Assembly (NCBI GenBank): GCA_950097015.1
Contig: CATNEN010000038.1
Location: 24,552,001 to 24,616,000, forward strand
DNA: 64,000 nt
DNA from: Macrostomum hystrix
Taxonomy: Eukaryota; Animalia; Platyhelminthes
Direction: 5' to 3'
The notes beneath the pieces are model-generated. The model saw only the letters and a program-made list of their open reading frames with translations, ran no database searches and had not been told where the DNA came from. The first letter of the stretch is position 1. Each line of letters begins with the position of its first letter. Of this stretch, positions 5,746 through 55,800 are shown piece by piece. The translations under genes and the position numbers were made by a program.

Positions 5746-6565
5746 CAGAGATAATAGCAAGAAGAATGGAGGGGATGAATTAAGAAAGAATATATTTATT
5801 TTCGCACAGAATTCACATTTAGAAGTTGTAAATAGATCCTAGACACTGAGGCGCGTCACTTTAACCCCCCAGGTGAGCTTGGCTGAAAGCTGACGACAGC
5901 TCACAATTTGCAGCCGTGCCAGTGACAGACTCCACTTAATCGACGAAGCCTTACAGACAGGGAGAGAAGAGGGAAAAACAGAATCGGATTTAAGCGGTTG
6001 GGACAACATTTAGCTACCTGGGGAGCTATAAACCCCACGCCCAAGCCATCAGTATCAGATTAAGTTAAGTCGTTTCGGGCGGGACATCTCAGCAGCATAA
6101 TTGAGGGGATGCCCAAACCCAAATTTTGTTCGAGTGCGTTCTTCAGCAGGGTCGCGACAGGAGAGACAGGTAAAAAAGGACCAAGAACTAGACTAGGCAC
6201 GGGCTGTTAAGCTTTTAATGATAAGGCGAACCTGCAGCGGCGGTGGGGTGGGCGCCGTGTTGGCAGCACTTATGACTAAATCGCAGCGATTTGGTAAAGC
6301 AGTCCCAGGAGGCGGAGCGACTTAGCCATAGCTTTAAGCTTCTTTCCAGAGAGCTCCGAAATGCTCCATTCTGCACCGCTTCTGGCATCATGGGAATCGG
6401 TCTGCCAGATTATAATAGCTGGCTAGCAGTGCCTGACCACTGCCATCACGGCTGCCGGTACATGTACAGGCCTGTGGCTGAGTGAGTTTTATAATAATAG
6501 TTAAAAACTAATTTTCAAGTCCACTGTTTGCCGCTTCGGTGATATAAAATGATTATGGCTTTTTT

Positions 6566-8002: not shown

Positions 8003-8259
8003 TTAATAATATAATAATAATAATTGCAGGAGGGCTGCGGGCAGTGGCACATCATTTGGTGACACTAGACCCGCAGCCTGAGCATACACTCACACAGGTG
8101 TGTATATCAGCCCTGACTTTCTCATCGTCAGGCAGTGTACACTTCAATATGCCTTGGAGGTTGGCCCTCAAGGGCGCAGATTGCACGACAAGCCCTCAAG
8201 CCTTCTCTCCGCGGCTGCGCCCCGGATGAATGTGGCCTCGGAGCGGGCACATCACCCCC
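8003..8259 (-). mobile_element. tRNA-derived SINE family B, internally deleted copy
   Basis: Reverse complement matches 61849-62218 (GGGGGTGA start, GAGGCCACATTC, CACTGCCTGACGA, GCGGGTCTAGTGTCACCAAATGATGTGC) and ends in an (ATT)n tail. Confidence 0.75.
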
Positions 8260-32200: not shown

Positions 32201-35200
32201 AGTTAAAACAGGAGTTGAAAGATTAAAACTAATGTAAGTAATAACGTCTATTTGACGAAAAGACTGGGGCAGCTAGGTCACTAGTTCGAATTTATGAGTT
32301 ATGTACAATAGTTCTCACAAAAATACGTCTTTGCTCGACTAGGGGGGATTTTTCTGACAATACAAGCGTAAAGTCTGCTGGGAGTCCTAATATCCGCTCA
32401 AAAAGGGAATTTTCAGCTTTGCATTTGGTTAAAAAGATATAAGTATGGCTATGTTAATACATAGCCAGATATAAACTTGTCTGAGCCTCTATGCACTGTC
32501 ATGTGAGTACAGTGGAGTGGCAAATCATTGAAAACCGCGAACAAACTTTCGATCGATAATTATTTTCGAAGCCGAGAAAGAACAAAATCAGTTGCTTCTT
32601 TGTGGGTAGTTTCGCATTAATCTTGGACAGACTGCATTCATTGCTGGATATCTGCTTCGTAACCCTTAAGTGCGCGGACACGAGAGGAAATTGTGAACAG
32701 TCTTTAAATAGCTCGTAATTCGCATTTCGCCGGCTTGGTTTTTTAATTGGCCTTGTACGTGTAGCCTGCACAGCACTATATAAATCGAGGTGTGCAATCA
32801 TCTGCATCATGGTCGTTCGTTTCCGCTTTTATAATGATGTCGTCAAGATATATTAAATGTCAATCTCATATCGGCAAAAAAGGCGGAACACCTTAAGTTA
32901 AGCAAAGTTTTCCGGAGCTGTACGTGTCTTTATCCCAAACGGGACGACTATAATTCCATCTATAGATGTTCCTTGCGGATACGAAAAATAAGTTAAGTCT
33001 CGGTCTCTTCTGTCCTCCCTTGACTTAATTGCCAGTAGGCCGATGTCAGCTGTCGAGAGGCTGGTGAACACGTAATTTTCACTGAAAACACTGAAAACAC
33101 TGAAGAGTCAGCTAGGCTATCAAAATGATTCTTCGATTAATGACAGGGGACTGTAAGGCCGGATTAATATGTTAACCCTCCTATAATCCTTCTTGACCAG
33201 GACAATGACGAAGCCCAATCGGAATTGCATTAGCCCGAATGATATGTCGCGCCGGAGCGATACGGGGTGGCAATCCTTAATTGTCAACCAGAGTGCAATC
33301 GACATTACGTACGTGTAACTTTGTCCGACCAAACCTTTACATGTGTAAGTGTGACGTCAACTAACTCGAAGTCAGGCTCGATTTGTCCCGAGGCGGAACT
33401 GCAGTTTAACAGCTGTAGGGGCAGCTTGGTTTAACAGTGTGTAAAGTAATCCAGTGCAAATATGATTTCGGTGGCCCACTGATTTGGAGTGGAGCGAGAT
33501 TCGCAGTGAAGCAGATCACTTTAAGTTGATAAATAGCATATACACTGAAGTTATTTACAATTGTTTGACTAATTGAAAAAAGAACGAGCGGAGCGTGAGG
33601 AAGTGCCATACGATAGTTCCCCTGACAGCTATTACAGAAGTGACAGATCTGTCCCCATTTGGGAATGGGATGGACTCAATAATCTCATTAGCCACCTATA
33701 GCTATCATATAGATTACAAATAGTGCAAATAGGTTTAGAGTTGTGTATACATGGCCATAGTCATAGCTGTCAGCGTTAATATTCAAAGTCAAAGTCCTTA
33801 TCATAGTAATTTAGAAATAGTAATATAGTCAGTCAATCACGTTCAGTAGGAGTAGGAAGTAGGAGTCGGCTGGAGTAGGAAGATTTTGGTGCTATTTTCC
33901 ACAGATTTGGTCACCATGATTCTAAGAGTTGAAATGCAAATTATACGGTGCATCAAATAGAGCATAGAGCACCGCGAGAGGTCAAAAATTCATAGCAGAT
34001 GGAGGGGCAGGGTGAAGTCCGGATAATGGAGTATTGTAAAGACTGGAGAGAATCGGAAAAGACTAGAGAAAACCAGCGGACCATTATGAGATAAAAAGAT
34101 AAAAATAATATTATAATTTAAAAAGTAAAAAACAGAGGCAAACCCACAAACGCGGGCACGTAAAAGACTGAATTTTTTTAATACAGACTGACGATGAAAG
34201 AAAGACTAAGCATAGGTCTACTGGCGCAGACAGGGCCGCGGCCAGGTCAATACAATGGGCTCGAGATGTTGCAAATCCGAGAGATCTGAGGGAGAGAAGA
34301 CTGCACCCCCAAAAGGGAGCCCATGGCAACTAAACAATTAAGCAACTGTGGCTGGATAAATTGGACAAAGACGAAAGAAAAGAAAAGAAAAGTAGCTATA
34401 TCTCATTTAAAAAGACATTCTATCCCACCCAAAGCGATCTAACGCAACCAATGTAGTTCGCATTAAATGAACCTCCCCAATTTTAGAGCCAATTGTCTTG
34501 CATGGCAACCTATCGCATTGGGTTTACGTAAAAAACTATAGCGGGAAGTCCTGTAGTGCCCATAAGAAAAATATAGGAATCTATAACAAATTCTTGCGTT
34601 GCTAACAACACCACCTCAGGGAGAGGGGTGGAAAAATACAAAATGCTATTATAAAAGCAAAAGCACGCCCCAGAGAGACCGTAACTCCGAAAGTTATCGA
34701 CATCGTAAAAGAAAGATACACAGCTAAAAGCTTTTGTTTTTTTATTCTCTTTTGTCCAACGAATCCGATTGGATCACTGGAACGTGGCGATCTCAAAATA
34801 GGATCATGATGATTGTGAATCATGACAAATAACCCTCAGCCGACCGACTTGGAAAATCTCAATGAAGCCTAAACTGTAGAATTTTACAGTTTTACTATAT
34901 TTTTAAGCTATTAATTATAGTTAGGCCCTATAAAGCACTTTAGGCCATTTAAATCATTTAGACACTCTAAATCATCTATGCCCAAGCCCAAGGGCTGTAA
35001 ACTTATTTTTAGCGAAAAACAAAAAAGCGAATATCGACGTCATAAATTAACGTGTATTAGGCCACCCGACGGCAGAGGTCTAGACGGGGAAAAAGCTTAA
35101 AATATCTCCCGTCTAGCCTGGAAAAAGCTCGTCTGTTAAGCTTTCTTCTATGGACTAGACCGGAAAAAGCTCATCTGTTTTAACTAACTAGTACTTCAAT

Positions 35201-35919
35201 GCAGCAAGGCTAGAAATTAAGCGATTTATTGTGTTTTGTTTAACCTGTTAAAAATCCTAAATTTTGAAATACGACTTTGTTTTAAAGTGCTGTTTGAATA
35301 AAAACGAATTTAAAATTCATCAGCACGGGGCTGGCAGTATATGATTCATTATCAGGTTTGATGTTACTTGCAGAATTTACAAGCTAGTCAGTTGCTTTAA
35401 AGCTATACATAGATGTGACTTACATTGTATGGTGAAGTTGAAGATTGCTTTTTGTCGAATATGAATTTTCTTGTAATGTAACAGTAAAGCCACTATATTA
35501 CTACTTGCTAGATTAGAAAGTTGTAGTAACAGGTTACAGGAATTAACTATTAACTCAGGTTCTTTAGCTTTATGGGCTTTTTCTGATGTGAAACTTTTGT
35601 TAAGTAGAAATCAAGCTAGGCTATGCCTAGGCACGATATATTTTCTAAACATTTGATCTATTTATCCAATAATGTGCTGATAAATTATATAAATACTGTT
35701 TAGTTATAGCTTTTTTGTTATTATAAATGCTAGTTAGTAGTTATATAAAAAATTATATGGCACTCATTTGCATGAAGAAAATTTATTGAATTGTTCTAAA
35801 CTACCAAATAGCTTTTTATGTTATGATCTAGTCATATTTGTTAATTTAGAGACATTATCTATATTAGTATTAAATACATTTTACAATATAAAGTATAACA
35901 TATATATATACTATATTTA

Positions 35920-37430
35920 TCCAGTCCTCCTCGCTACCCAGCCCTCTAGTCCTCCTAGATATCCTGCCCCTAGCTGTCTAGTCCTAGCTAGCAATCTTGC
36001 CCCCCTAGCTGGCCAGTCCTAGTTAGCTATCCTGGCCCCTAGCTGTCCAGTCCTAGCTAGCTATCCTGCCCCCTAGCTGTCCAGTCCTAGCTAGCTATTG
36101 TGCCCAGTGCCCCCCTAACTGCCTAGTCCTAGCTAGCTATCCTGCCACCCCTAGCTAGCTATCCTGCCCACTAGCTGTCCAGTCCTTGCTAGAAATCTTG
36201 CCCCCCCCTAGCTGGCCAGTCCTAGCTAGCTATCCAGGCCCCCCCTAGCTAGCTATCCTGCCCACTAGCTGTCCAGTCCTAGCTAGCAATCTTGCCCCCC
36301 CTAGCTAGCAATCCTGCCCCCCTAGCTGTCCAGTCCTAGCTAGCTATCCTGCCCCCTAGCTGTCCAGTCCTAGCTAGCTATTGTGCCCAGTGCCCCCCAA
36401 CTGCCTAGTCCTAGCTAGCTATCCTGCCACCCCTAGCTAGCTATCCTGCCCACTAGCTGTCCAGTCCTAGCTAGAAATCTTGCCCCCCCTAGCTGGCCAG
36501 TCCTAGCTAGCTATCATGCCCCCCTAGCTAGCTATCCTGCCCCCCTAGCTAGCTATCCTGCCCCCCCTAGCTAGCTATCCTGCCCCCCTAGCTAGCTATC
36601 CTGCCCCCCTAGCTAGCTATCCTGCCCCCCTAGCTAGCTATCCTGCCCCCCTAGCTAGCTATCCTGCCCCCCTAGCTAGCTATCCTGCCCCCTAGCTGTC
36701 CAGTCCTAGCTAGCAATCTTGCCCCCCTAGCTGTCTAGTCCTAGCTAGCTATCCTGCCCCCTAGCTGGCCAGTCCTAGCTAGCAATCCTGGCCCCTAGCT
36801 GGCCAGTCCTAGCTAGCTATCCTGGCCCCTAGCTGTCCAGTCCTAGCTAGCTATCCTGCCCCCTAGCTGTCCAGTCCTAGCTAGCTATTGTGCCCAGTGC
36901 CCCCCTAACTGCCCAGTCCTAGCTAGCAATCCTGGCCCCTAGCTGGCCAGTCCTAGCTAGCTATCCTGGCCCCTAGCTGTCCAGTCCTAGCTCGCTATCC
37001 TGCCCCCTAGCTGTCCAGTCCTAGCTAGCTATTGTGCCCAGTGCCCCCCTAACTGCCTAGTCCTAGCTAGCTATCCTGCCCCCCTAGCTGTCCAGTCCTA
37101 GCTAGCTATCCTGCCCCATAGCTGTCCAGTCCTAGCTAGAAATCTTGCCACCCCCCTAGGTGGCCAGTCCTAGCTAGCTATCCTGCCCCCCTTAGCTAGC
37201 TATCCTGCCCCCCTAGCTAGCTATCCTGCCCCCCTAGCTAGCTATCCTGCCCCCCCTAGATAGCTATCCTGCCCCCCCTAGATAGCTATCCTGCCCCCTA
37301 GCTGTCCATTCCTAGCTAGCTTTTCTGCCCCCCTAGCTGTCCAGTCCTAGCTAGCTATCCTGCCCCCCCACTAGCTGTCTAGTCCTATCTTGCCTCCCTA
37401 GCTTTCTAGTCCTAGCTAGCTATCCAGTCC
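35920..37430. repeat. Left subterminal array (CTAGCTAGCTATCCTGCCCCC / CTAGCTGTCCAGTC modules)
   Basis: Modular tandem array mirrored at 48540-49400. Confidence 0.92.
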
Positions 37431-37784
37431 AGTCCAGTATTTATACAAGAATACTTTTTTTCTTTATAATTTATTATAAAGAATAATTTATTAAACTTGG
37501 TTTATGATTTTATATTGCTAACCGAGGCACTATTTCGAAGTGATTAAATAAGGCTATATATATTTGATTTCCTAAACTATTATATGACAAATGAGATACA
37601 ATTCATATTTCATTTAATTACTTAAATTAAGATAAATCTCCAGTTATGAGCAACCTGCCAACCTTACCAGGGTAGCTATACCAACCACTAGCTAGAAGGT
37701 TATATTTATATACTACAAGCTGTGGCCTATAAAGCTGGATTTAACGAAGTCATTTATTATGTTCCCTTTATATGACACGGACCC

Positions 37785-38095
37785 TGCTCTGCCCCTGCCC
37801 CTGCCCCTGTCCAACTTTCGCACTGCCCTTGTCTGGCCCCTACCCCACCCCTTGCCTCTACCGATGCCCTACCCCTGCCCTAGACCCAGCCTCAGCCGCT
37901 GCCCCTGCTCCAGCCCCGACCCCCTGTCCCTGCCCCTGCCCCAACCCCCTGTCCCTGCCCCTGCCCCAACCCCCTGCCCCTGCCCCAACCCCCTGTCCCT
38001 GCCCCTGCCCCAAACCCCCTGCCCCTGCCCAGTCCCATCCCCTGCCCAAACCCTGCAGTAGTCCTGCCCCTGCCCCACCACCAGCCCCTGCCCTG
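37785..38095. repeat. (CCCCTG)n-type C-rich repeat upstream of the transposase exons
   Basis: Repeated CCCCTGCCC; explains the Pro- and Gly-rich ORFs at 37759-38104. Confidence 0.85.
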
Positions 38096-38157
38096 CTGTA
38101 GCACTACTTTGTTCCTTTTTCCTTACTGTAGTTTTCTTATGCTTTATTTTATTTCAG

Positions 38158-41100
38158 TTTCCTCGTTCAGTAAATCTTGGCATCCGAGTATCGCGGCGCC
38201 GCGGCCGTGGTTCACTCTTTCTGCCCTATAATGTCGCTAGAGCCAACTTTAACCGGCAAACTACTCAAAGCAGTCAGGAATCCGCAGCTTCTCAGCATTC
38301 TGTAGCAGATCATGTATCAGATCATGCAGAAAGGGACTGGGACGTCGTAGATTCCGTGGCAGCATCACCAAAGTTGCAGCAGCCTCTACAGGACTGGGAG
38401 CGAGAAGAACCAGTTATTGAGCAGCAGTCGTCTGCTTGTCTAAAGCAATTTATTCTACAGCCGTGCTGCCGCTGCATGAATGATGGTTTCGTATATTGTA
38501 CTACATGCGCCAGCAAATTCTGCTCGGATTGTATGAAAGATACGCATGGCACCTTTCTGGTGCACAAATTTACCGAGTGGAATGTAAGTTGACTGTTCAT
38601 AACTTCATATGAAAGTGCATCTTCTTATGTCGTGGATGTGACTTTCGTTTACTCTTCAAACTCATTATAGGGAGAGATGTACCAAGACTCTACTCCTGCT
38701 GAGCGGCCTGTCATTCATTGCTGTGTTAATTCCCGAGAGGATTTACATAGTAGCACGTCTGCTAATGTATACGACCATCTTGGTCGTACGTAATTTTTAA
38801 CATTTGCTGTGTATTGCGATGGTGCTACCCGTATTAACATTGTTTTACGTATTTACATTCTGGGGCAATATCATTTTAGATCGCATCTTTGTGTCAGTTC
38901 ATCTTTGTGCGGAATGTTCTATTAACGATGCTATGCTTATTGCGGGCTACTTTCCTGTTACAAAAGTTAGTTCCGACAAATTCATTCACAAGAGACTTCT
39001 GGATATGCTCGATTGTCTCACATCCGACGGAAAGATGTCACTTCTACGAGCTGTGCGCTGCTTGCTTACGTTTGATAATATCACTGAGGGTCGACAGCGC
39101 GTAAGTTATAAAAAACTTGTATCTTCTAGTCCTATATACTAAAAATGGGATAGTATCTTAAAATATAAATATGGTTAAGTATAGAGCGTTTTACCAACAA
39201 ACTCAAAGCCGATAACAATTGGAAAAACATTTTCGTTTCCAGACATGGCTGCATTTATACGATGCTCTTCGTCGAAACGATGTGCTTAAAAGATATAGGC
39301 AACTTCTTCGCGATGTGCTTCCTTGGCCGACCGGTTGCTTGTTGTGTCCAGATGCTGTGAGTAATAACTTGCTACTGTTTTTCGAAATTGAGCAGGTTTT
39401 CCTTAGGAAAGACGATAGACGAAGTGCACATTGTGTCTAAAATTTGCTACCCCAGCTACGGTGTCTAATTTCTAAATTGCTGCTCTTAATTAGATCACTG
39501 TTGAAATTTACTAAAATGCAAGCATTCGCATGTATACACGAATCAATAATTGTTGTAAAATTTAAATCGCGGATCCGTCAAATTATTCAGAACACTCCAG
39601 GTTCGTTGCCGTCCACAACAATCGTCACAGGAGATGGGTGCATGGGTTTGCGTCACAGACGCCGGGCTGGTCAGCAGCTGTGTCCATCACCACTCGATGG
39701 TCGTCTTCCGGCACCTTTTATTCATGTTGATGTCGATCCCAAGGAAGCTGGCGAAGATACTGCTTCGTGTTCGAATTTTCAAGCTGGCTCAGTCACTCGG
39801 AGAATTTCTTCAAGAGCCCTTGATGTTAACGGACTCTTCATGCTCTCCTGTCGCCACTCAATTATAGTTTCATGCGCTGACATCCGATCGCCAGGAGAAC
39901 GCCTTGTATACGCTGAACAATGTCTTCGATACTTCTTGGAAGCAAGTGGCGTAAATGGGGTAGTCATCTTTGTCTATGACATTGCCTGCAAGATGTTCCG
40001 TCGATTGCAGCAGATCGCGGCTGACTATCCATATGTAACCATTGTTCCTGCTGTAAACGCCTTTCATGCATTCGCTCACAAGACATCCTGCCGAGTATGT
40101 ATTTTGTGTCTCATTTATAAATTTCGTATTACATTTGTTCGTACCAAAACAAGAAAGAAAATAGTTTTGATTGTACATTATATTTTTTGCCACATATCAT
40201 TCCTATTATTTCATATTTCAGCTAAAAAACTCAGTTAGATTCGTTGAAGGCTGCGGCCTAACCGATGGCGAACACTGTGAGAGGTTGAATTCATCGTTCC
40301 GACCATACGGCCCACAGTTAAAGGAGATGCGCATTGACCACCGCACTTACACTCTAGCTCATTACATTTGGCGTTCGAATGTCAGTCACTTACTGGAATG
40401 TGGTCAGTGTTTGATTTTTTGTCCTTTTACTTTAATGCTATCTCTCTGTTCTCTGTCGCATATTTTCTCAGTTTAAAGGTTGAAAATGTATATATCCTCA
40501 ACTTTTGACAGCAAATGTATTAAAAATGGATGTCATTTATTCAGTTATTCGATGGCGGTTATCATTTATGGGCGCCGATTTATTGAAAGAATTTTTTTCA
40601 ACTTCCTCCACTCCAGGGAAATGGCTGCAAAACAGACTTCGTTTGCTGCGCAGGCACTCGGCGTCTCTGACCAGTCTCTTGCAGAAATTGCTTCCAGAAG
40701 GTAACACACTGCCTTAATTGCGGTTGTCTCGCGTGAGTAAAGCAATAAAACAGTCGTGCAATGAAATCATATTTTTCAGATCGTGAGCCGCACCAGCTAT
40801 TTCTACGAGGACAGCTGCACCTTCAGGAGTATTTAGTTGAAGAAGAATCCTCTCCGCTGACTCCATTAGAGCGCCTTCGGTGCGGAGCTGTTGAGCGGCT
40901 GCGCTTGTATGCAAGCCTTCGCCAATGCAGTGCACAAAGCGACGCCAAGGTGTACATCGCGCGATTGTCTGTTGTTCAGCGCGAAATGGCGGCCATTTGG
41001 TCCAAGGATCTGCCACAATTTTCACGGGAACCTCTGGCCACATATTACAATCCAACGGCCGATGTCTACTGCGGCGTGTCTCTATCTGAACCTGCTGCAC

Positions 41101-41312
41101 GGTATCGTCTTCTCATGATCGAAGCTTCGTCTCTATTTTCCCGAATAGGTGAGGAGAAAAATCTGATCCGCGAAGAAGCTTCGCGTCTGCAGTTACGGCT
41201 CTATCAAGAAATCGAGTCGTTACAAGGCAAAACAGGCTTGCTTTCCCATTGTCGCCATGTCCTTGAAGACCTGCGGTTTCAATGCGTTGATGTGATCGCA
41301 CAAATGCATTGA
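38158..41312 (+). CDS. CxC-domain KDZ transposase, at least 8 exons, at least 725 aa (start exon not found)
   Basis: Exons 38158-38583, 38671-38785, 38880-39100, 39243-39356, 39591-40094, 40222-40402, 40617-40700, 40780-41312 splice in phase with no stop. Cys clusters CCRC..CTTC..FCSDC..H..H..WNG, CAEC..GYFP, CLLC. KDZ motifs GDG, CSNFQA, SCRH, GE, YDIAC, FHAFAH..C, GCGLTDGEHCER. Confidence 0.85.
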
Positions 41313-41899
41313 TTTTACGGTGTCGTGCAAGATAAAAGTTTTTTTCTTTCTGTTATTTTCTAACTCATTTAACTGCAACAGAAGAAATTTTTTCGATGTG
41401 TTATTGGTGTGCACAATTACTTCCTACAGTTCCCATTTATATTGTTGCAGTACAATCTTCCTTAATACGGAAAATTGTATTTCTTGTATTTCTTGCTGAC
41501 TGTGGATTTACATCAAAACAACTTTGTGAATCTACTCACTAGCGCGCTATTTTATTACTTTTGTTTTCAGTGCTGCGATTTAGTTAATAATAATTGTTAC
41601 TTTGAGCACAATTCTTATGCCACAGTGGCGAGAGAAGCGAGAATTCGCGTCCATTTTGAAAATTGATTGGATATGGTCGCAGTTACTTTGCTAAAAAGTA
41701 ACAACAAACCAAATGTCAAACCCTAAAAGGCAGTGTTAATGCGCCTTCGTTTTTTTCATAATTCTGCTTAACTACTAGCAGTAGCCGATCTACCATGAAT
41801 ATCGGAATTGACACGTAAATGCATATTTGCCTAGTCTCATTCACTGTAATTAAGCTGTGGAGTTCGACTATACCGTACCTTTTTGCATGCTAGTTAGGC

Positions 41900-42050
41900 A
41901 AGTTTGCAAGCAATTTCTGCAATTTCTGCTGGGTTGGACATCTCAATCGGACAGAACCAATGCGACTGTGAATGGTCAGCGCGGTCAGAACCTCAGCATC
42001 TGCCTGGCCATCTCACCTGCAGTCGGTCTTGTGCACTACAGAGTGTTAGG
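41900..42050 (+). pseudogene. IS630/Tc1-like (DDE_3) transposase fragment nested in the KDZ element
   Basis: GQRGQNLSICLAISPAVGLV resembles [19 protein letters not shown] of the element at 54231. Confidence 0.6.
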
Positions 42051-42958
42051 GTAAGCAAAAGCCTGGAGGCGTACGGACACTTTGCAGACAATAATGATCG
42101 AAATAACGGATAATAAAAGTGTCGAGTGAGCAGACGGCCACTCGGACTCCATCGAACGTAACGTAAATAACCGAAGACGCTCGAGCAATGAGAACAACCA
42201 GGTGAAATAATAAACGCGGAAAGTCGAATCTTACCGGGAGCTCATAAATCGCGTCTCGGGCTAGTAGTGCAGGTCGTGCACGCGCTGACTGCTCAGTATT
42301 ATTGGCAATCCTCTGCTCTGTGCCTGCGCTCACCGCAATGCACTGTGTGGTTCTTCTAAGTGTCAAAATCTGATCTTAGGTAATCGATTTGATTCGTCGG
42401 AGTAAGAGACCGCGCGTCAAACCAAGTTTTCCGGAGCAATTAAGCAGGGTAGGGCGGTCGAGAGCGCGTTATGGCATGGCGAGCGGAGCGCACAAATAAA
42501 TAGTGGCGGGGAGGGGCGAGAGAATCAGAGCAGGGGCGGGGCCGGGCTGCGCCCTCCAGCCAATGACATTGCCAGGGGGTGGCAGACGCAAAATTGGCTC
42601 GCACCAGCCTCGCATCCATGGAGGTGAGAAGGGGAGGAGTGGGGCTTAGCCACCCCGAGTTGGGTGTTGGGGTTGGGGCAGGCTGCAGTAGAGCCGAGAG
42701 GCGAAGAAGAGAATTAGAGCGTCGAGAAAATAAGTGTTTGCAGCCAATCAGCGGCCTGCCTGGCTAAGCCGAGGGCCAGACAAACCGGAGAACCGGATTG
42801 GGCTGGTGGGGGTAATTGCAAATACACTGGGCAAGGGGTTGAGACACAAAAGTACATGTACGGGAGGAACGCAGGAAGGGCGGCACGAAGCGCCGCTCGA
42901 CACCTGCGTCCTGGTGCTTGCTGCTGCAGACTGTAGTGAGCCAGTCGAGCAAAGCTAA

Positions 42959-43352
42959 TTGGCCGAGTATGGCGGGTGTGGCAGAAGGTTTGAGCCTTGT
43001 GACAGCCTCAGTGGTCTTCTGAGCAGTGTGTGTTATTGCATTATCGTGATGGAGAATGAAGGGCTTGGTGTCTCTGTGACGCTTGTTTTGAATGTCATGC
43101 ATCCTTCAGTACATGTACATGTAGCGATCAGAATTGATGCTTGTGTCAGGCTCCTGCATAAGCTCGATCGTAAGGGGTCCAGTGCGGTCGCAGAACAAGT
43201 GTCATGCGCATTGCCTTCTAGAAATGCCTCTCGACGAGCTTTCATGGGTGCATGGATCCGAACCTTTGATTCCCCAAACTTTTAGCTTCTTCTCGAAGAG
43301 TAGAAGTGGCTTCTCAAAGTAGTCAACGGCAAAACTTTTTAACCCCCTCGTA
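42959..43352 (-). mobile_element. Mariner relic nested in the KDZ element
   Basis: FILHHDNAITHTAQKT is the mariner second-Asp motif; TIR-like end TA-CGAGGGGGTTAAAAAG on the - strand at ~43352. Confidence 0.65.
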
Positions 43353-45317
43353 TGCAGTATACATGTAGCTTCAGACTATAGTCTTTGAAAGCAAATGAAG
43401 TCTAGAATTGAAGTTTCTCAGTTTTCTTGCTCTTGGTTTTGGTACCGGGTTCGGGTGTAGATGTCCGGGTCGGGTTCGAGGTTCGGGGTTGGGTGTTCGG
43501 GTTCGGGTTTTCGGGTCGGGTTTTGGTACCGGGTTCAGGTTTCCGGTGTTTTTATTATTATCAGTTTTATTTAAGTATTGCCTTATTACGTGATAAAGCG
43601 TCTTTCGAAATCGCGCCATTTCAAAAATATTTTTTTCTTAAACTGAACTGGCGTAATTTGCACTGCACTAATGAATTAATAATCGTGATGCCTTAGTCAT
43701 TCTAATGTATATAAATCATTCTACGAATTTTAGGCCTTGAATTATAATACATACATATAGATATACATATTTCTAAAGTCTAAACAGCTCATCCTAATTC
43801 TGCATTATGTCTTTAAATGGTCTTTAATTATGTTTTCTTTTTACTTCGTTAGCTATGTAATCCCACGTCAGCAACTTAAATCTGAATTTTTAACATACAA
43901 ACCTGCCTGAGGCTTTCAGGAGTAGAGGGTAAAGTGAAGAGTACGACTGTCCGAGGAGTCGAGTAGTGTAGTGATAGTGGGGGAGAAGAGTTAACAATAG
44001 AAAAGTAGAAAAAGGAAAAGGCGGTATTTTAAGACAAGTACTCTTCTTAGCCATCACTCCAAGTCCAGGAGATAGTCGGGTAAAGTTCGGGGTCGGGTCG
44101 GTTTTTGGGTCCGGGTCGGGTTCCGGGTTCGGGGTTTACCCCAAGTCTGGTCGCCCGGTTTTGCCGAAGGCGGCATTTCATTTTTTCATATCCTTTTATG
44201 CTTATGAGTAGTGTAACATCCCTTTTACTAATGGTCCTCGTGCCAAAGTTTACAGCTCATGGTTGTTTGTGTATCAAGGAACGCATCATCAGCATGATTC
44301 TAGGTGTTGGTCGGCTAAGCCAGCGGTACAGAACTCACCTTAGGAATTTACCTTCTCTTTACCTAATTTCATGGAAAATGTAAAAAAATCTGACTGCTCG
44401 AAAACCGACATCTCGAGAACAGATGTGCAGACAAAACCTCCGATCTTATAAATAACGGACGGACGAATAAGATGCAGCCGTGAGTATCGATAAAGTATAT
44501 TATTAAAAGGAAGAATAAGCGTTTACTGTTTTAATGCCCCTACTATTTTTGTAAGCAACTATTTTAGTATACGATTGTCACTAAAAGTTCCCCACGTAAA
44601 TGTTTTTATCTTCTAAGCACTTCCCTAAATCCCAATATCCTAAAATCGAATCTGTACAATCTACCCTAAAACTAACCTACTACCAGTGCTAGGCTATGAT
44701 ATCAGAGTTATCCCTTAATATCTGTTAAAAGCTACGCTTTGATATTGTCAGTGTTACACTATTGGACATTGAAAAGTGTTCACATGAGCAAGTGAGCAAT
44801 TTCTCCCTCCTATCACAACTTGCGCAATTGAAACCTGCGCGTGTCCACCCTGAATAACTCACTCATCCCAACTAGTGATCCATTTCCCTCTCCGCAGTAT
44901 TGTAACTTGCGCAATTCGCACAACGCGCAAGGTGCTAAGCCTTTGGTTGGGGTGAGGGAGAGTTGGATTATTAAAGCTGCCGCTGCCCAGTATACTCGTT
45001 TACGATCCGTGCAGTTGGTCGACAATTTGGCCGGTCGCATACGACCATCCGTGGCACATGTACTGCTATCCGCCGCCTCTCAATCTGCCTCGACAGTTTT
45101 TTAGTTTGTACTTGAAAGAAGTGGAAAACAGGAAGCATTTTTTTTAATTCTCTTCAGCTGCACATTCTGTTCAAACATTGATAACATAAATTGCGTGCCT
45201 TGTCTAGGTCACGAAAACAATATTGCCGTTTTAATTTTTGGTGGTGGATTCAAAAGTGCAAGACTTTGTGTGCACTCGCACTACGATGATAATAATATTT
45301 TTAATAATAATCGATTA

Positions 45318-45455
45318 CGCCTGTCCCAATCTTGCCACATGTGCATCCGACAGCACAGCTGGCAGCTACTGCGCGGCGCACCTGAAGGCTGCGAACGGCT
45401 GTTCAGTCCATGGACTGAGGGGACCCGGCACCCACCCTCAATTACCACCCACCGC
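45318..45455 (-). mobile_element. SINE family A 3' fragment
   Basis: Matches 61700-61830 and 63820-63950 (CCGACAGCACAGC..GTTCAGTCCATGGACT..CACCCTCAATTACC). Confidence 0.7.
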
Positions 45456-45641
45456 ACCCACCCGAAACGAGCAAAATTAATCAGTAAAAACAAAAAGTTC
45501 TACATAGCTCGTACAAATCATCAAATCACAAATTATCTAATACAAAACAGCAAGACCATGTTTCAAAGCACTCAAACTACTTTGCAGTAAAATATATATT
45601 GCGAAATAACTTTGTGCTGCGCGCCATGTTAAGAAGCATAA

Positions 45642-48320
45642 TTAATCAGCAAGAACAAAAAGTTCTCCATCTTCATACAAAACATTATTAGCTAAATCCC
45701 CATCCCTTGTCGGCCCACCGCTTTCAGGCCCGCCGCTTCTAGGCCCGCTGGAGTTCGGCCCGCCGCCTCTAGGCCCGCCGCTTCCTGGTCCACCGGAGTT
45801 CGGCCCACCGCTTTCAGGCCCGCTGGAGTTCGGCCCGCCGCCTCTAGGCCCGCTGGAGTTCGGCCCGCCGCTTCTAGGCCCGCTGGAGTTCGGCCCACCG
45901 CTTTTAGGCCCGCTGGAGTTCGGCCCGCCGCCACTAGGCCCACCGCCTCTAGGCCCGCTGGAGTTCGGCCCGCCGCCACTAGGCCCACCGCTTCTAGGCC
46001 CGCTGGAGTTCGGCCCGCCGCCACTAGGCCCACCGCTTCTAGGCCCGCTGGAGTTCGGCCCGCCGCCTCTAGGCCCGCTGGAGTTCGGCCCGCCGCCTCT
46101 AGGCCCGCTGGAGTTCGGCCCGACGCCACTAGGCCCACCGCCTCTAGGCCCGCTGGAGTTCGGCCCGCCGCTTCTAGGCCCGCTGGAGTTCGGCCCGCCG
46201 CTTCTAGGCCCGCTGGAGTTCGGCCCACCGCTTCTAGGCCCGCTGGAGTTCGGCCCGCCGCCACTAGGCCCACCGCTTCTAGGCCCGCTGGAGTTCGGCC
46301 CGCCGCCACTAGGCCCACCGCTTCTAGGCCCGCTGGAGTTCGGCCCGCCGCCTCTAGGCCCGCTGGAGTTCGGCCCGCCGCCTCTAGGCCCGCTGGAGTT
46401 CGGCCCGACGCCACTAGGCCCACCGCCTCTAGGCCCGCTGGAGTTCGGCCCGCCGCTTCTAGGCCCGCTGGAGTTCGGCCCGCCGCTTCTAGGCCCGCTG
46501 GAGTTCGGCCCACCGCTTCTAGGCCTGCTGGAGTTCGGCCCGCCGCCACTAGGCCCACCGCCTCTAGGCCCGCTGGAGTTCGGCCCGCCGCCACTAGGCC
46601 CACCGCTTCTAGGCCCGCTGGAGTTCGGCCCACCGCTTCTAGGCCCGCTGGAGTTCGGCCCGCCGCCACTAGGCCCACCGCCTCTAGGCCCACTGGAGCT
46701 CGGCACACCGAAGTGCGGACCGCCGGAGCTCGGCCAGTCAAGGTCTTCTGATTGGTCGATATGGTCTTCGTTGCCTTCGGGTTCGCTTACGTCGATTGGA
46801 ACTGGAGAGAAATAAAGAAATTAAACAAAACGGCTAGTTTAAATTGAGTCATGATTTTAAAATAAGGATAAATCAGTCAGTGAATAAACGGAAACAGCTA
46901 GACGATATTTCAAAGCACTCAAACTTCTCTGCACTAATTAAAATCACCTTTATCGTATAAATCGGTAAAGTAAAGCAGTGTAAATAACGAAATAACTTCA
47001 TATTGTGCGCTAAACTAAGAAGTAAGTTTAGTTTATTAGTTAGTTTAGTTTAGTTTAGTTTAGTTTAGTTAGTAAGTAAGTAAGTTTAGCTAAGTAAGAA
47101 GTAAGAACTAAAACTAAGACCTGATCTTGATGGATGGAATACGATAGGGCTCGAAAGTGCCGCTTTAATAGACTCCATTGTCATCCATGTAGGATCGCAT
47201 AACCATGGTTCGAATTGGCCAATTATAGGCAACTTCTTCCATTGGACGCGGCCATGAAACCCTGCTGCATCTAAAATGTTAACAATCCAAAAAATGTGGC
47301 AACTTTTGTCACGTTTTGTCTATTTAACTATAATATAATCCCTAATAAAAGTAGTTTCCTATTACAATCTTACTGCTGACACATCTTAATTACCAATAAG
47401 ATTATTCATAGCCACATTGAACGCTAAAATAAATTTGATCTTCTCTAGGATCTGTCTATGCCCAAAAACCAGCTAGAGAAAAATAACTTACTATATGCAT
47501 CCTGAGCCTGCTTGCGAAGGGCCTTTCTCAAACCCATTATGCTTTTTTTAGGCGGATTTTTCAAATGGCCGATAAGCTTCTAAAAATAGTTTTAAACAGA
47601 GCATTATTAATTAATCAAGAGTAAGCGTAGGTCATTAACCAATGAGACGTGGCTCATACCTCTGACACTTGCCGCGCCAATGGATGAAGTTCTACATCTT
47701 CTGGGCTGCATGAAAAGTATGGTGGCTTATCCTGACGGGCCACAATTAAAAAAAATCTCCACGATGGGTCCTTGCGAAGCTAAACTTTTCGATAGGTGTG
47801 ATAGCAAATTAAAAAGGTGTGGTAGCGATAAAAAGTGAGTCCGCCAAGCAAAAAAATGCAGTTTACCATTTTCTCTATCGTTGAGAGCTTGGGGGCAGTC
47901 TGTGCTGCCTTTGCAGCGAGCCGCTGTCTTTCCGAGCCACAGAGAGACTTGAATCTGGCTGCCAACTCCTTCTGTTGATCTGAAAATAGAAAAGTAACAG
48001 TATAAATATATCATGCACCTTTATTACCTTTACTGTACATTCGGGATTTTGCTTTATAACAACCAATTAAAAAAATTGAGCAATTAGCTACAGTATAAAC
48101 GACTTGTCAGCTTCATGGATATGCTAAATAACTAAAATCACATCATTAAACATGTACATATACACATCCGTTTCAAGAAAAAAATGAAAAAAATGCATGA
48201 ACTTATTCTTATATTACTTACACAATTAAAAAGGATTAAGAAAGCACATACAATGAAGAATACTATCTTACCGAATCGTTTATTTTCCTGCAAAAAGGAT
48301 GAATACGCAGTGTGAACCAT
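45642..48320 (-). CDS. Transposon-borne HMG-box protein with a Gly/Ser/Pro low-complexity tail, 6 exons, ~559 aa
   Basis: Exons 48320-48272, 47979-47867, 47779-47660, 47579-47492, 47270-47121, 46801-45642, phases 1,0,0,1,1, 1680 nt, no stops. N-terminus [41 protein letters not shown] fits the HMG-box helix pattern. Confidence 0.72.
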
Positions 48321-48539
48321 CTGCAAAAGTTAAAACGAAAAACCAGCAGGTTACAGATACTAATAACAAAACAGGTTGCAGAATTAAAAGGTACTGCAGA
48401 GCTAGGACTGATAAATAAGATAAGAAAGCAAAAGGATAAGGAATCGAATGAAGTACAGGGTACTTGGCAGGATAGCTGAAAGGACTAGAGAGCAAGGAGG
48501 CAGCGTAGCTGGGAGGAAAGGAAGGTGGCGTAGGACTAG

Positions 48540-49400
48540 ACAGCTATGGGGAAAGGATAGCTAGGGGGGCAGGATAGCTAGCTAGGGGGGGGCAGGATAG
48601 CTAGCTAGGGGGGCAGGATAGCTAGCTAGGACTGGCCAGCTAGGGGGGGGCAAGATGGCTAGCTAGGACTGGACAGCTAGGGGGGCAGGATAGCTAGCTA
48701 GGGGGGCAGGACAGCGAGCTAGGACTGGCCAGCTAGGGGGGGGCAAGATGGCTAGCTAGGACTGGACAGCTAGGGGGCAGGATAGCTAGCTAGGGGGGCA
48801 GGATAGCTAGCTAGGACTGGCCAGCTGGGGGGGGGGGGCAAAATGGCTAGCTAGGACTGGACAGCTAGGGGGCAGGATAGCTAGCTAGGGGTGGCAGGAT
48901 AGCTAGCTAGGACTGGCCAGCTAGGGGGGACAAGATTGCTAGCTAGGACTGGACAGCTAGGGGGGGCAAGACTGCTAGCTAGGACTGGACAGCTAGGGGG
49001 CAGGATAGCTAGCTAGGACTGGCCAGCTAGGGGGGACAAGATTGCTAGCTAGGACTGGACAGCTAGGGGGGGGCAAGACTGCTAGCTAGGACTGGACAGC
49101 TAGGGGGCAGGATAGCTAGCTAGGACTGGCCAGCTAGGGGGGGCAAGACTGCTAGCTAGGACTGGCAAGCTAAGTGGGCAGGAAAGCAAGCTAGGACTGG
49201 ACAGCTAGGGGGCAGGATAGCTAGCTAGGGGGGGCAGGATAGCTAGCTAGGGGGGGGCAGGATAGCTAGCTAGGACTGGACATCTAGGGGGCAGGATAGC
49301 TAGCTAGGACTGGCCAGCTAGGGGGGCAAGATTGTTAGCTAGGACTGGACAGCTAGGGGCAGGATATCTAGGACTAGAGGGCTGGGTAGCTAGGAGGACA
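48540..49400. repeat. Right subterminal array, inverted counterpart of 35920-37430
   Basis: GGGGGCAGGATAGCTAGCTAG and GACTGGACAGCTAG modules. Confidence 0.92.
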
Positions 49401-51594
49401 GGATATATATGGTATATATATGTTATACTTTATATTGCAAAATGTATTTTAATACTAAAATAGATAATGTCTCTAAATTAACAAATATGACTAGATCATA
49501 ACATAAAAAGCTATTTGGTATTTTAGAACAATTCAATAAATTTTCTCCATGCAAATGAGTGCCTATATTAAACTACTAACTAGCATATATAATAACAAAA
49601 AAGCTATAACTAAGCAGTATTTATCAGCCCATTATTGGATAAATAGATCAAATGCTTAGAGGGCTGGGTAACTAAGAGGACTGGACAGCTAGCATTTATA
49701 TATATAAACTAGCATTAATAATAACAAAAGGTTCTAACTATGCAGTTTTTATCAGCACATTATTGGATAAATAGATCAAATGTTTAGAAAATATATCGTG
49801 CCTAGGCATAGCCTAGCTTGATTTCTACTTAACAAAAGTTTCACATCAGAAAAAGCCCATAAAGCTAAAGAACCTGAGTTAATAGTTAATTCCTGTAACC
49901 TGTTACTACAACTTTCTAATCTAGCAAGTAGTAATATAGTGGCTTTACTGTTACATTACAAGAAAATTCATATTCGACAAAAAGCAATCTTCAACTTCAC
50001 CATACAATGTAAGTCACATCTATGTATAGCTTTAAAGCAACTGACTAGCTTGTAAATTCTGCAAGTAACATCAAACCTGATAATGAATCATATACTGCCA
50101 GCCCCGTGCTGATGAATTTTAAATTCGTTTTTATTCAAACAGCACTTTAAAACAAAGTCGTATTTCAAAATTTAGGATTTTTAACAGGTTAAACAAAACA
50201 CAATAAATCGCTTAATTTCTAGCCTTGCTGCATTGAAGTACTAGTTAGTTAAAACAGATGAGCTTTTTCCGGTCTAGTCCATAGAAGAAAGCTTAACAGA
50301 CGAGCTTTTTCCAGGCTAGACGGGAGATATTTTAAGCTTTTTCCCCGTCTAGACCTCTGCCGTCGGGTGATTAGGCCTAGGCCCTACCGTTATGACTCTG
50401 CATTCATAGATGTAGCAATTAAATAAATAAATATATATATATTTAATTTTGTCCAAAATAATCTTTTTCCAATCAAGTCCACTGTTAGTCCAGAACTTTG
50501 TCCAATATCGGCTAGGCCTAGTCATAGATCAACACAATTTAGCTAGGCCTAGCTGTTATCAATTATTTTATTTGCCTAATGGCTAGGCCCCCTAGCTAGA
50601 CCTAAGTAAAATATACATTAGGCCTATCCTAGGCCTATGTACTTTGCCTTGCCTAGCATAGCTAGGGTAATGTATCATCAACTGAACAGTGTATCTTCAA
50701 AACTGAACAAGAATTTTGACCTCTTCCTTGGTCTCCTGCAAGACAGAAACAAGCTATCGTGTTTCACAGAACAACTAATTTGAGAGTTGAAGAAATTATC
50801 TACAAGCTGAGGCATGATGTGCAATGAAGCATTAAGAGGAAAGAAAGATATTGATGTTTCAGTAGAAATTTTTACTGCAAAAGCATACTTTTTAACCAAC
50901 TTTTTTTCAGTATGTACTTTAGACAAAGATTGTATGTGGTTGCTTGCCAATTAAATGACCATAAATGTAGTTATTTATAGAGCATGAAAAATGCTTTCAA
51001 ATTACATAATTCATGATAGTTCACTTCTTAAAATAAGATTAAACCACTCACTCAAATTGTAAAACCAAACATCAAATTCTCTGTTTGGTTTGAAGATACA
51101 TGAAAATCATTGTTTGGTTTTAGATAAAAAGCAGGAAAAACTTTTTTCTATTTGATAAAATTGCAAAAGCAGATACTTTTTAGAAAGATGTAACTGTTTT
51201 CTATAACTTGGCTTTTGATTTATCATCATATCTTAAATAGAAAATCTGTAGGCCTAGCTTAGGTTTGAAGTTAAAAAAATACACATTCTTGTTTGGTTGA
51301 TGATACATTACCCTAGCTATCCAGCCATTCTAGATAAGAAACTTGTTTGGTAGCTAGCTAAGCCTGATCACTTTAATCATTATTTATCAATTTTGGCCAA
51401 CCTAGATATGTCAATAAAAGCAAGATGTTTAATGTGCTATTCCCCTATAGTATGATATAACAGATTTTGGCTAGCTATGGCTATATCTAGCCTAAATAGG
51501 CTTAGCAATTGGCTCATTTTGATTTGTTTATTCTATTCAATTTGATCTAAGATTATTCATCAAAGCACTAGACCTACCTACTTAGGGCCTAATA

Positions 51595-52822: not shown

Positions 52823-55800
52823 ATGGCTGGTGCTTGTGATCGAACTCTGCCAATATTTAGCATGGGTGATGGCACCCTATCAGTACCAATGTCTCTCCAT
52901 GCTAAAAACAGGCAACGCCTTTGTGAGAGACTACGTACTGATGCTGCTTATGTTGCTATGCCAAGCATTGTGCTTCTACAAGGTGAAACTGAGCTGCCGC
53001 GAAATGGCACTGATGTGACCTACATGTTTCACCAGGACTCATTCTTTCACTGGGCATTTGGCGTGCTTGAACCAGACTGCTACGGAGCTATTGACGTGGC
53101 CACTGGCCGCAGCTATATATTTATGCCCCGCCTACCAGAAGATTATGCCGTCTGGATGGGCCGGTTGCAGACCCCCATAGAATTCCAACGGAAGTATGAT
53201 GTTGATGAGGTGAAAAAAACAGCTATTTTTATGTGTATTTAGGAATATTCTCACCCAATAGGATATCATCTGACATCCTAAAGCTCAGCTGACACCCTTG
53301 AATCTCATCTGACACCATTGAGTACCTTTTGACATCCTTGACTCTCATCTGAGATCCTCAAATCTCTTCTGACATCCTTGAATCTCAGCTGACATCCTTG
53401 AATCTCATCTGACACCCTTGAATCTCATCTGACATCCTTGAATCTTATCTGACACCCTTGTATCTCATCTGACATCCTTGAATCTTATCTGACACCATTG
53501 AATAACTTTTGAAATCCATAAATAGTTTATGAAAAACCTTCCGAATTCCAAAGTTTAGCTTCTGACACCAACTCAATATTTACTGACACTATTTCTGACT
53601 TGGAAACTAATTGTGTTCCTTAACATCAGGTGCACTATGTAGACGAGATGGCTCAAGTTCTAGCCAATCTAGGCCACTCTGACGGCTCCTCAAATCGTCC
53701 AACTCTTCTAACACTGTCCGGCGTCAATTCGGATAGTCGACTGCGAACTCGCGAAGCCGCATTCGATGGCATCGGCGATTTTCCGGTGAATCGCGATCTA
53801 CTCTACAAAGTAATCTGCGACTGCCGGCTGTACAAGACCGAAGAAGAGCTGGCCGTGCTTCGCTATGCCAATAGAATTAGTAGCGACGCTCACAAGCGAG
53901 TGATGCGAGCTGTTCGACCTGGCTGGAGAGAGTACCAAGCCGAGGCCACATTCCAGCACTACTGCTATCACATTGGCGGTATGAGACACGTGGCTTACAC
54001 CTGCATCGGAGCATCCGGTTGTAACTGCGCCGTACTGCATTACGGCCACGCTGGGGCGCCTAATGAGCGACTAATTAACGACGGAGATATGTGCCTGTTT
54101 GATATGGGCGGCGAATACTATGGCTATGCTAGCGATATCACCTGCAGCTTTCCGGTTAATGGAAAATTTACTGCCAATCAGAAGCTTGTCTATGAGGTTA
54201 ATTAATTTTGTGTTTCTGCCTTCTTCCTAGTATAGCTTTTGAATGCCGATGGGCATTCAAACTCAGCCAGCCCATCTTGTCACTGCGTTTTTTTTACTGA
54301 AGCTGCTAATTTTTACCATAGACATGCATTTTAAGACCAAGCTATCTCAGCTTGGGACGAGCAATCTCAGCCAACATATAAGTTCTATGTTATTCTGTCT
54401 ATAGTTTTGTTAACATTTTTTAAACAGTCTATTTACAAGAGAAAAACAGGGTAACAGAAAACAGAGTATGGGATGGGATATACAGAGCAAACTTTGAAAA
54501 TGGCTACCAGAGATGATCAGTTAACAGGCTATTTCAGTTTAGTTGAAAGGTACCTCCTGGATGCATTGTGGGAAGCTCCGGTTGCAGTGAATTTCCCACC
54601 TGGCTACCTTCATTGGCGTCACAACTTGCAAAGAGTCTCGGCCCACTCGCTCCAGCAGAAAAATGCGCCATTCCACGCAGGTGACTCCATCAGGTCGGCC
54701 ACCAGCTTCTTCCTCCACCAGTGCGGGGTCAGCGAGCTGCAGCTTGATCGAAGCCTTCACTGCACTATGAGCCATCTCACACGGGTTGAGAAACGGCGAG
54801 TAAGCGGGCAGCAGCTGAATTTCAAACTGATGGCGGTGCTGCTCCGGCACTGTCACACCACGATGAAAGCTTGGACCATCGCAGACTATGAAGACTCTGG
54901 CGTTGCCGATTTCCGGGATGACTTGCTCCACGAGGTCATTGATGAATTGTTGAAACCTCTCCTTTGTCTGGCCTCCTCTGAAAAACTCACTCTTCACCAA
55001 CCCAAGTGCAGATGACACGGCCAGACAGATGGAAAGATTTGGACCCCTCTGTGTTGGGCAACGCCGTCTCACTGGATGACCCCGTCGCGACCTTCCCTGT
55101 GATCTGCGCGTCCAGAGGTTGTACCCCGTCTCGTCTATAGAACTTATATGTTGGCTGAGATTGATCGTCCCGAGCTGAGATAGCTTGGTCTTAAAATGCA
55201 TGTCTATGGTAAAAATTAGCAGCTTCAGTAAAAAGAACCGCAGTGACAAGATGGGCTGGCTGAGTTTGAATGCCCATTCGCTGAGATAGCCTGACAAAAG
55301 CTATATCTTGTCAGCTGTATAGTATTAATTATGCAATTTTGTAGGATTAATTATACAAATTTGGGATCAATTGGGTGTAATTAGAGACAAATTAGGTAGA
55401 TGTGGGATTAATTAGGTAGATGCGGGATCAATTAGGTAGATGTGGGATCAATTAGGTAGATGTGGGATCAATTAGGTAGATGTGGGATCAATTAGGTAGA
55501 TGCGGGATTAATTAGGTATATTTGGGATTGGATAGGTAATATAGCTTTTGTAGTTGTAAACTAGTAATATAAGAAAGGCTATGTGGATATTATTTGAGAA
55601 CTGTAGCTGCATGTCTGATATGCAACTCAGGCCGTACTGGACGCCAATCGGGCCGTTCTTGCCGCCTTCCGTCCCGGCGCCTCCTGGCCCGAGCTGCATC
55701 TGCTGGCTCTGCGTGTCATCCTGCGCCACCTGGTTGCTATGGGCATTCTGCACGGCGACCTGGACGAAATGATGGCAGCCAAATTAGGCGCCGTTTTTAT

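Follow-up and report, generated by a model that had tools for sequence, protein, structure and literature searches.

A recently active, probably autonomous KDZ-class DNA transposon with a conserved partner gene in the flatworm Macrostomum hystrix

A 64,000-nucleotide stretch of the Macrostomum hystrix genome (assembly GCA_950097015.1, contig CATNEN010000038.1, positions 24,552,001 to 24,616,000; hereafter the window) contains, at 35063-50369, a 15.3-kb element that is very probably a complete and recently active KDZ-class DNA transposon, likely to be autonomous, with an insertion signature that fits the Kyakuja lineage. Comparison of the window with itself identified terminal inverted repeats (TIRs) of 622 nt each, the left at 35063-35684 on the plus strand, beginning CACCCGACGGCA, and the right at 49748-50369 on the minus strand, which are 100% complementary to one another. 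The element is flanked by a 7-bp direct repeat, ATTAGGC, at 35056-35062 and 50370-50376, which comparison with other copies supports as a target site duplication (TSD). Further inverted similarity of 96-97%, interrupted by gaps, continues inward of the perfect TIRs, and each arm holds a tandem array of one ~34-nt unit, AGTCCTAGCTAGCTATCCTGCCCCCTAGCTGTCC, which runs on the plus strand in the left arm (35948-37425) and is inverted in the right (48558-49371, minus strand). Between the arms lie two multi-exon genes, both pointing inward and hence convergent: gene 1, on the plus strand at 38158-41312, and gene 2, on the minus strand from 48320 to 45642. An initial annotation, made from the letters of the window alone, had described matched termini, 622-bp TIRs in which no mismatch was noticed by eye in the stretches compared, the flanking ATTAGGC duplication, foldback-like arms and a pair of inward-pointing multi-exon genes, and each of these features was recovered here.

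When the TIR was searched against the genome assembly (42 contigs, 220 Mb), six full-length copies were recovered at unrelated sites. All of them begin CACCCGACGGCA and end TGCCGTCGGGTG, and each is bounded by its own perfect 7-bp TSD (ATTAGGC, TTTTTTT, AATTGAT, AATTTGC, AATAATT and GTGGGGC). An eighth matching base is present in only three of the six copies, and the TSD is therefore taken to be 7 bp and not 8 bp. The copies are collinear along their entire length and differ from one another by 1-12 substitutions per 8.17-kb non-repetitive body (at least 99.85% identity), with differences in length confined to the tandem arrays. This narrow divergence agrees with the earlier suggestion of a recent insertion. 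Short derivatives, 346-441 bp long and sharing the termini of the full-length copies, also occur, three with perfect 7-bp TSDs and two further ones whose TSDs agree at 5/7 and 6/7 positions; these are older derivatives resembling miniature inverted-repeat transposable elements (MITEs). In all, perfect 7-bp TSDs, every one different, flank 7/7 full-length elements (the six copies and the relative described below) and three MITEs. A partial copy of the family was also seen on contig C1 (C1:15941057-15942081 and C1:15948543-15948593), in which exon 3 of gene 2 is 100% identical, the end of exon 5 is present three times in tandem, 314 bp apart, and a TIR tip lies 6.5 kb away.

A genome search with the KDZ exon of gene 1 and with exons 3 and 5 of gene 2 located a diverged relative, here termed the sister family, at C39:4610101-4628264 (18,164 bp). 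Its TIRs are perfect over 963 bp, its terminal 12-nt tip is identical to that of the window element and its TSD is ATTATAG; it carries the same gene pair in the same orientation, with the transposase on the plus strand and gene 2 on the minus strand. Gene 1 was modelled from the blocks conserved between the two families in tblastx, joined at GT..AG introns that keep the frame, and its introns fall at matching places in both. The resulting model has eight exons and a single open frame of 725 codons, which is intact in 6/6 copies with 0-2 amino-acid differences. Exon 1 (38158-38583) starts at the acceptor TTTCAG; exons 2 (38671-38785), 3 (38880-39100), 4 (39243-39356) and 7 (40617-40700), as well as exon 8 (40780-41312), which carries the stop codon, were placed by sister-family conservation and GT..AG signals. 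Exons 5 (39591-40094) and 6 (40222-40402) encode the KDZ domain: the Pfam model PF18758 scores 66.5 bits (E 3.5e-18) on the former, over model positions 3-164, and 37.2 bits (E 3.4e-9) on the latter, over positions 165-216, against a cut-off of 26.6, so that positions 3-216 of 217 are covered jointly. In the ESM Atlas the neighbours of the KDZ exon are KDZ clusters. The prediction of a KDZ transposase is thus confirmed above the curated cut-off on two adjacent exons, and the intact frame in all six copies favours the autonomy that had been suggested as possible. A homologous-protein search for relatives of the KDZ exon (proteins of 146-464 amino acids) gave no scored match.

The start of gene 1 is less conventional. 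Conserved coding begins directly after the TTTCAG acceptor in both families, and no in-frame ATG is found at or upstream of this conserved start in either. Exon 1 contains a Cys/His cluster with weak matches to B-box models (20.1 bits, E 7e-4, below the Pfam cut-off of 27), and it is described here as B-box-like. None of the CxC families (CxC1-CxC6) matched any gene 1 exon at E<=1 in an exon-by-exon search, which may miss such a cluster, and exons tested singly likewise gave no match to CxC4 or SWIM. At least 59 KDZ-like places were found in the genome, and the other KDZ families are 30-40% identical. A third related KDZ transposase (58% identity), at C1:10850927-10852750, survives as a partial relic in which exons 3-7 are retained at 50-85% amino-acid identity; neither element ends nor gene 2 occur within 13 kb of it.

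Gene 2 is expressed and spliced. Contigs of four public runs were aligned to positions 46700-48540 (1,841 letters), and in three runs, all of one study, they contain five CT..AC joints, equivalent to GT..AG on the minus strand (46801>47121, 47270>47492, 47579>47660, 47779>47867 and 47979>48272). The runs have no RNA record, and are taken to be RNA-derived because their contigs are spliced; no processed copy of gene 2 was found in the genome by a search with its exons. Introns 1 and 5 are uncovered by contigs over 124-248 nt; contigs from a diverged copy extend over parts of the shorter introns. The six-exon outline proposed in the initial annotation is matched exactly by the five joints. Exon 1 (48320-48272) opens with the ATG at 48320, immediately behind a TTGCAG acceptor, and is followed by exons 2 (47867-47979), 3 (47660-47779), 4 (47492-47579) and 5 (47121-47270), each of which agrees with the contig joints and with the sister family. 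Exon 6 (45642-46801), delimited by contigs, frame and repeat analysis, contains a tract of 15-nt (5-codon) units coding for a Gly/Pro/Ser/Asn-rich sequence, and closes with a C-terminal tail that is conserved and ends at the stop codon. Joined in silico, the six exons give one open frame of 559 codons with canonical splice sites. Upstream of the ATG, contig cover extends at least 220 nt, past 48540, to the inner edge of the right array (48540-48558), which is compatible with a transcription start in the right arm.

Among the copies, the repeat tract of gene 2 varies in length between 385 and 505 codons and is always in frame. Two copies, that of the window and C1b, have an undamaged gene. Exon 4 contains a run of seven A in the window and of six A in three other copies, which is either a frameshift or a homopolymer assembly error, and in copy C1a exon 6 is interrupted, within the repeats, by a long interspersed nuclear element (LINE), a 6,411-bp non-long-terminal-repeat retrotransposon with RVT_1 and RNase H domains in a 1207-codon open reading frame (ORF).

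One contig joins the gene 2 acceptor (48320/48321) to a remote exon (C1:2782217-2782246; C11:247919-247948) that occurs four times in the genome and has a GTAAGC donor behind it; the copy on C11 lies ~25 kb upstream of the element copy C11b, on the matching strand. This contig is likely to represent a chimeric read-through transcript from a host exon into gene 2. The possibility that the loose contig end at 48320 was a spliced leader was considered and rejected, given its length of 107 nt, the lack of a terminal AUG, and its origin in a four-copy exon with a GTAAGC donor.

Comparison of the two families indicates that gene 2 has been retained by selection. Its five N-terminal exons occur in the same order in the sister family with 44-70% amino-acid identity, and its intron positions and phases are identical, despite blastn finding no DNA similarity between the families across the gene 2 exons. 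Over 171 codons the proportion of non-synonymous differences (pN) is 0.28 and that of synonymous differences (pS) is 0.79, which is saturated, and this difference shows that purifying selection has acted on gene 2 since the families split. The last exon is of low complexity in both families, with unrelated repeat units, 15 nt long in the window element and 18 nt long in its relative. Beyond the repeats the C-terminal tails are again similar, that of the sister family ending ..WENGELIVVAI. The 4.3-kb spacer between the genes (41313-45641) has no conservation between the families in tblastx. It holds fixed pieces of other dispersed repeats (43435-44136 and 45286-45449) and a mariner-like remnant, a short open frame with a mariner-like motif (ILHHDNAITHTA) at 42767-43105 on the minus strand that is fixed in 6/6 copies and has no Pfam match. 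In summary, the separate second gene that had been claimed for this element is expressed, spliced and conserved.

What gene 2 encodes was approached exon by exon. Pfam searches of single exons gave nothing relevant at E<=0.1 or E<=10, and profiles of the gene 2 exons found no relatives in the genome beyond the two families. Searches of PDB sequences with exons 5 and 2, and with profiles of exons 5 and 3, came back empty or with talin and IL-9 as chance matches. AlphaFold modelling of exon 5 by itself reached a pLDDT of 54, too low for use, with no Foldseek match in the PDB at E<=0.001, and the ESM Atlas gave no usable match for this exon. When the exon 5 profile was run with HMMER against 1.84 billion representative proteins, the only match was P0001, which was judged spurious, being a 7-fold repetitive protein matched over a 15-residue stretch. 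Region 1-40 of exon 6 gave no scored match in a homologous-protein search. Identity with a GTF2I repeat was not supported, PF02946 (cut-off 27 bits) having zero matches genome-wide at E<=10 and no PDB profile match being found. As judged from these searches, gene 2 is an orphan that occurs in the two families only.

The ends of the element suggest how it may be mobilised. A 15-16-nt motif, CTAG(A/C)C-N1-2-GG(G)AAAAAG, recurs 18, 51 and 93 nt from the tip at both ends (35080-35169 on the plus strand and, as its mirror image, 50263-50352 on the minus strand) and has 0 matches in the remaining 48.7 kb of the window. The MITEs retain this motif, and the sister family has it 18 nt from the tip. These reiterated motifs are most likely candidate transposase-binding sites, and the first ~100-140 nt of each end are enough for mobility, as the MITEs show. 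It is proposed that the transposase binds the 12-nt tip together with the three motifs, within the first ~110 nt of each end, and would then cut and paste the element with a 7-bp staggered cut at the target.

Transcription of both genes would begin in the arms of the element, and a host spliced leader (SL) would be added to both mRNAs. The SL of Macrostomum lignano ends ...TTGCATG (PMC8629364), and the M. hystrix genome contains 19 exact copies of SL genes ending GACTCAATTTATTGCATG|GTAAG, the 3' end of which is identical to the M. lignano SL, together with ~70 copies of variant SL genes ending GACTCTCTTTTTTGCATG|GTAAG. The SL genes were seen in arrays on C15, C17 and C42 (~11.6-kb spacing) and at C39:12.67-12.75 Mb (927-bp spacing). 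The 3' AUG of such a leader would be in frame with both acceptors; joined at 38157|38158 it would read AUG-UUU-CCU-CGU, and in this way the SL may supply the start codon that the transposase otherwise lacks. The product of gene 2 is predicted to have a conserved head of ~170 residues, a length-variable Gly/Pro/Ser tract and a conserved C-terminal tail, and may serve as a family-specific accessory factor acting in trans, most likely a cofactor that binds DNA or the transposase, comparable to MURB of MuDR, TnpA of En/Spm and the Myb-like protein of PIF/Harbinger. This role is suggested because the gene is conserved, fixed in the element and analogous to those proteins; it could equally be a selected cargo with another function.

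Several observations weigh against this account as a whole. The exon model of gene 1 derives only from conservation and splice signals, and trans-splicing of the SL onto either acceptor was not observed, the contigs having covered gene 2 with one of them joined to the remote exon. The affinity to Kyakuja, which the TSD and termini suggest, has to accommodate the fact that fungal Kyakuja elements are without TIRs. The MITEs have no 34-nt arrays, which indicates that the arrays are dispensable for mobility, and the disruption of gene 2 in up to four of the six copies indicates that this gene is not needed in cis. Furthermore, no domain, fold or homologue beyond its own genome was found for gene 2 in the exon-by-exon searches, and its part in transposition is therefore argued from conservation and analogy only.

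Given these points, it is possible that gene 2 is a passenger with no role in transposition, an orphan acquired by the ancestor of the two families that either confers some other benefit on the element or the host, such as anti-silencing or chromatin targeting, or hitch-hikes. Extra ORFs without a domain are usual in KDZ elements, for example those of Cryptococcus; the MITEs are mobile with no gene whatsoever; no DNA-binding domain is demonstrable in gene 2; and up to 4/6 of the young copies have a gene 2 that is disrupted or may be frameshifted, whereas none has lost the transposase frame. Nevertheless, a passenger is considered rather unlikely on three counts: first, simple hitch-hiking would leave unexplained the low pN against a saturated pS, the identical intron phases and the conserved tail, in DNA that can no longer be aligned. 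Second, the genome search found no host paralogue that could have been the source of such a cargo. Third, both the position of gene 2 and its convergent orientation have been preserved.

A further alternative concerns the transposase, namely that its 725-codon frame lacks a true N-terminus and start, and that the element is non-autonomous and mobilised by another KDZ family. The conserved start without an ATG would fit such a defect, as would the modest length of the frame, KDZ transposases often exceeding 1100 residues, and the failure of Pfam to recognise a CxC or SWIM domain; the many other KDZ-like places in the genome would offer a source of transposase. This is improbable, however, given that six copies keep the frame almost unchanged and that the sister family shares the exon 1 start at the acceptor, and an in-frame AUG is available from the host SL. 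The other KDZ families are moreover too dissimilar to be likely to recognise the ends of this element.

The initial annotation had identified gene 2 as an HMG-box gene, an assignment that was not supported. A six-frame genome scan with HMG_box (PF00505, cut-off 25.4 bits) found 46 places, including half boxes split by introns, and none was in any copy of the element, nor did any gene 2 exon match at E<=10. In a filter-free test with a hidden Markov model built from 20 native HMG boxes, exon 2 of the window element scored 5.8 bits, its sister-family counterpart 3.6 bits and exon 1 ~2 bits, whereas true half boxes score 40-50 bits. A genuine but divergent HMG box at the N-terminus of gene 2, bending DNA at the element ends, is improbable: exon 2 of both families does score above all 200 composition-matched shuffles, and the alignment is collinear, with exon 1 on helix 1 (model positions 6-17) and exon 2 on helices 2-3 (33-56), but the scores fall far below threshold, the linker has 4 residues in place of the usual ~15 (11 short), neither the basic strand at the N-terminus nor the last part of helix 3 is present, and no PDB sequence matches.

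The favoured interpretation therefore remains a complete, probably autonomous KDZ transposon accompanied by a putative accessory gene. This raises the further possibility, advanced here tentatively and as a conjecture that may well prove wrong, that Kyakuja-like KDZ elements of flatworms are obligate two-component transposons. The orphan gene 2 protein, with a head that is either degenerate and HMG-like or a novel DNA-binding fold, and with a disordered tract encoded by repeats, would then belong to a new class of cofactor that recognises the end motifs or arrays, would be required for assembly of the transpososome, and would be co-expressed with the transposase through the SL that gives the latter its start codon. 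Few DNA transposons have been studied as little as the KDZ elements, on which functional work is almost all fungal. The present family is a clean case from an animal, very young, its ends defined and accompanied by candidate binding motifs, non-autonomous derivatives and an intact transposase, as well as a likely case of a transposase start codon provided by a host SL. It also has a partner gene kept by selection across two families. With these features the need of KDZ transposases for an element-encoded cofactor becomes directly testable, and Macrostomum has transgenesis tools.

Elsewhere in the window, an intact Gypsy-type pol ORF of 1333 codons (15533-19531, plus strand), with protease, reverse transcriptase, RNase H and integrase, lies in a block of 63% GC and is flanked by arrays of the same 19-nt unit at 14359-15227 and 19864-22025. 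A Tc1/mariner-type DDE_3 ORF (54542-55297, minus strand; E 1.5e-17) is located ~4 kb past the right end of the element, and a large exon of a host gene for a DUF747 eukaryotic membrane protein (E 1e-88) lies at 25751-27010 on the minus strand. Positions 1-28000 are unusually dense in long minisatellites with units of 19-33 nt and strong strand skew, for example those at 6564-8003 (33 nt x 44) and 19864-22025 (19 nt x 112).

Among described KDZ lineages, Zisupton and Dileera have 8-bp TSDs, and Kyakuja has 7-bp TSDs, CA..TG termini and no TIRs (Kojima 2025, PMC12730594). The 7-bp TSD and 5'-CA..TG-3' termini of the present element correspond to the published Kyakuja signature, and the link to Zisupton drawn in the initial annotation could not be sustained, given the 8-bp TSDs of the latter. 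Fungal Kyakuja elements (PMC12730594) share with this element the KDZ domain, the 7-bp TSD, the CA..TG termini, a large size and an additional gene; they differ in having no TIRs, compared with perfect TIRs of 622-963 bp here, in their hosts, which are not animals, and in their passenger, a TET/JBP dioxygenase where the flatworm families have an orphan partner gene. With the present family, the Kyakuja-type signature would reach into animals and would include elements whose TIRs are long. Zisupton, reportedly described by Bohne et al. in 2012, and Dileera, taken together with KDZ1-3 and KDZx1 of Cryptococcus, are similar to the present element in having a KDZ domain, a transposase of several exons, TIRs that run to hundreds of bp (236 bp in KDZ1), a size of 6-11 kb and domainless extra ORFs, and differ in their 8-bp TSDs and in carrying CxC1, or CxC4 and SWIM, which the exon-by-exon searches did not detect here.

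The initial annotation had regarded a multi-gene layout as undescribed for KDZ elements, and several precedents contradict this. KDZ1 of Cryptococcus (10.9 kb, 236-bp TIRs, 8-bp TSD) has three genes, and KDZ2, KDZ3 and KDZx1 are likewise multi-gene (bioRxiv 10.1101/2024.08.15.608186); the fungal TET+ KDZ families carry an extra gene (PMC12730594), and giant KDZ elements of Ectocarpus and Chlamydomonas carry accessory genes. In the literature no report was found of KDZ elements in flatworms, nor of a partner gene or extra ORF conserved between KDZ families.

Further parallels for the arrangement of genes and ends come from other transposon systems. MuDR of maize, with its genes mudrA and mudrB, belongs to the MULE superfamily and has a 9-bp TSD and ~215-bp TIRs with promoter activity. 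Its transposase is unrelated to that of the present element, and the promoters in the arms described here are putative; the two nevertheless share convergent genes, one near each long TIR, of which one encodes the transposase and the other a family-restricted accessory protein with no clear domain. In the En/Spm (CACTA) elements, with TnpA and TnpD, and in PIF/Harbinger, with ORF1 and the transposase, the second protein binds reiterated subterminal motifs. Gene 2 differs from these in having no Myb/SANT or other recognised DNA-binding domain, and the MITEs of the present family differ in keeping the terminal motifs and not the arrays. With both systems the M. hystrix element shares the pairing of a transposase with a second element-encoded protein and the presence of reiterated motifs, here at both ends.

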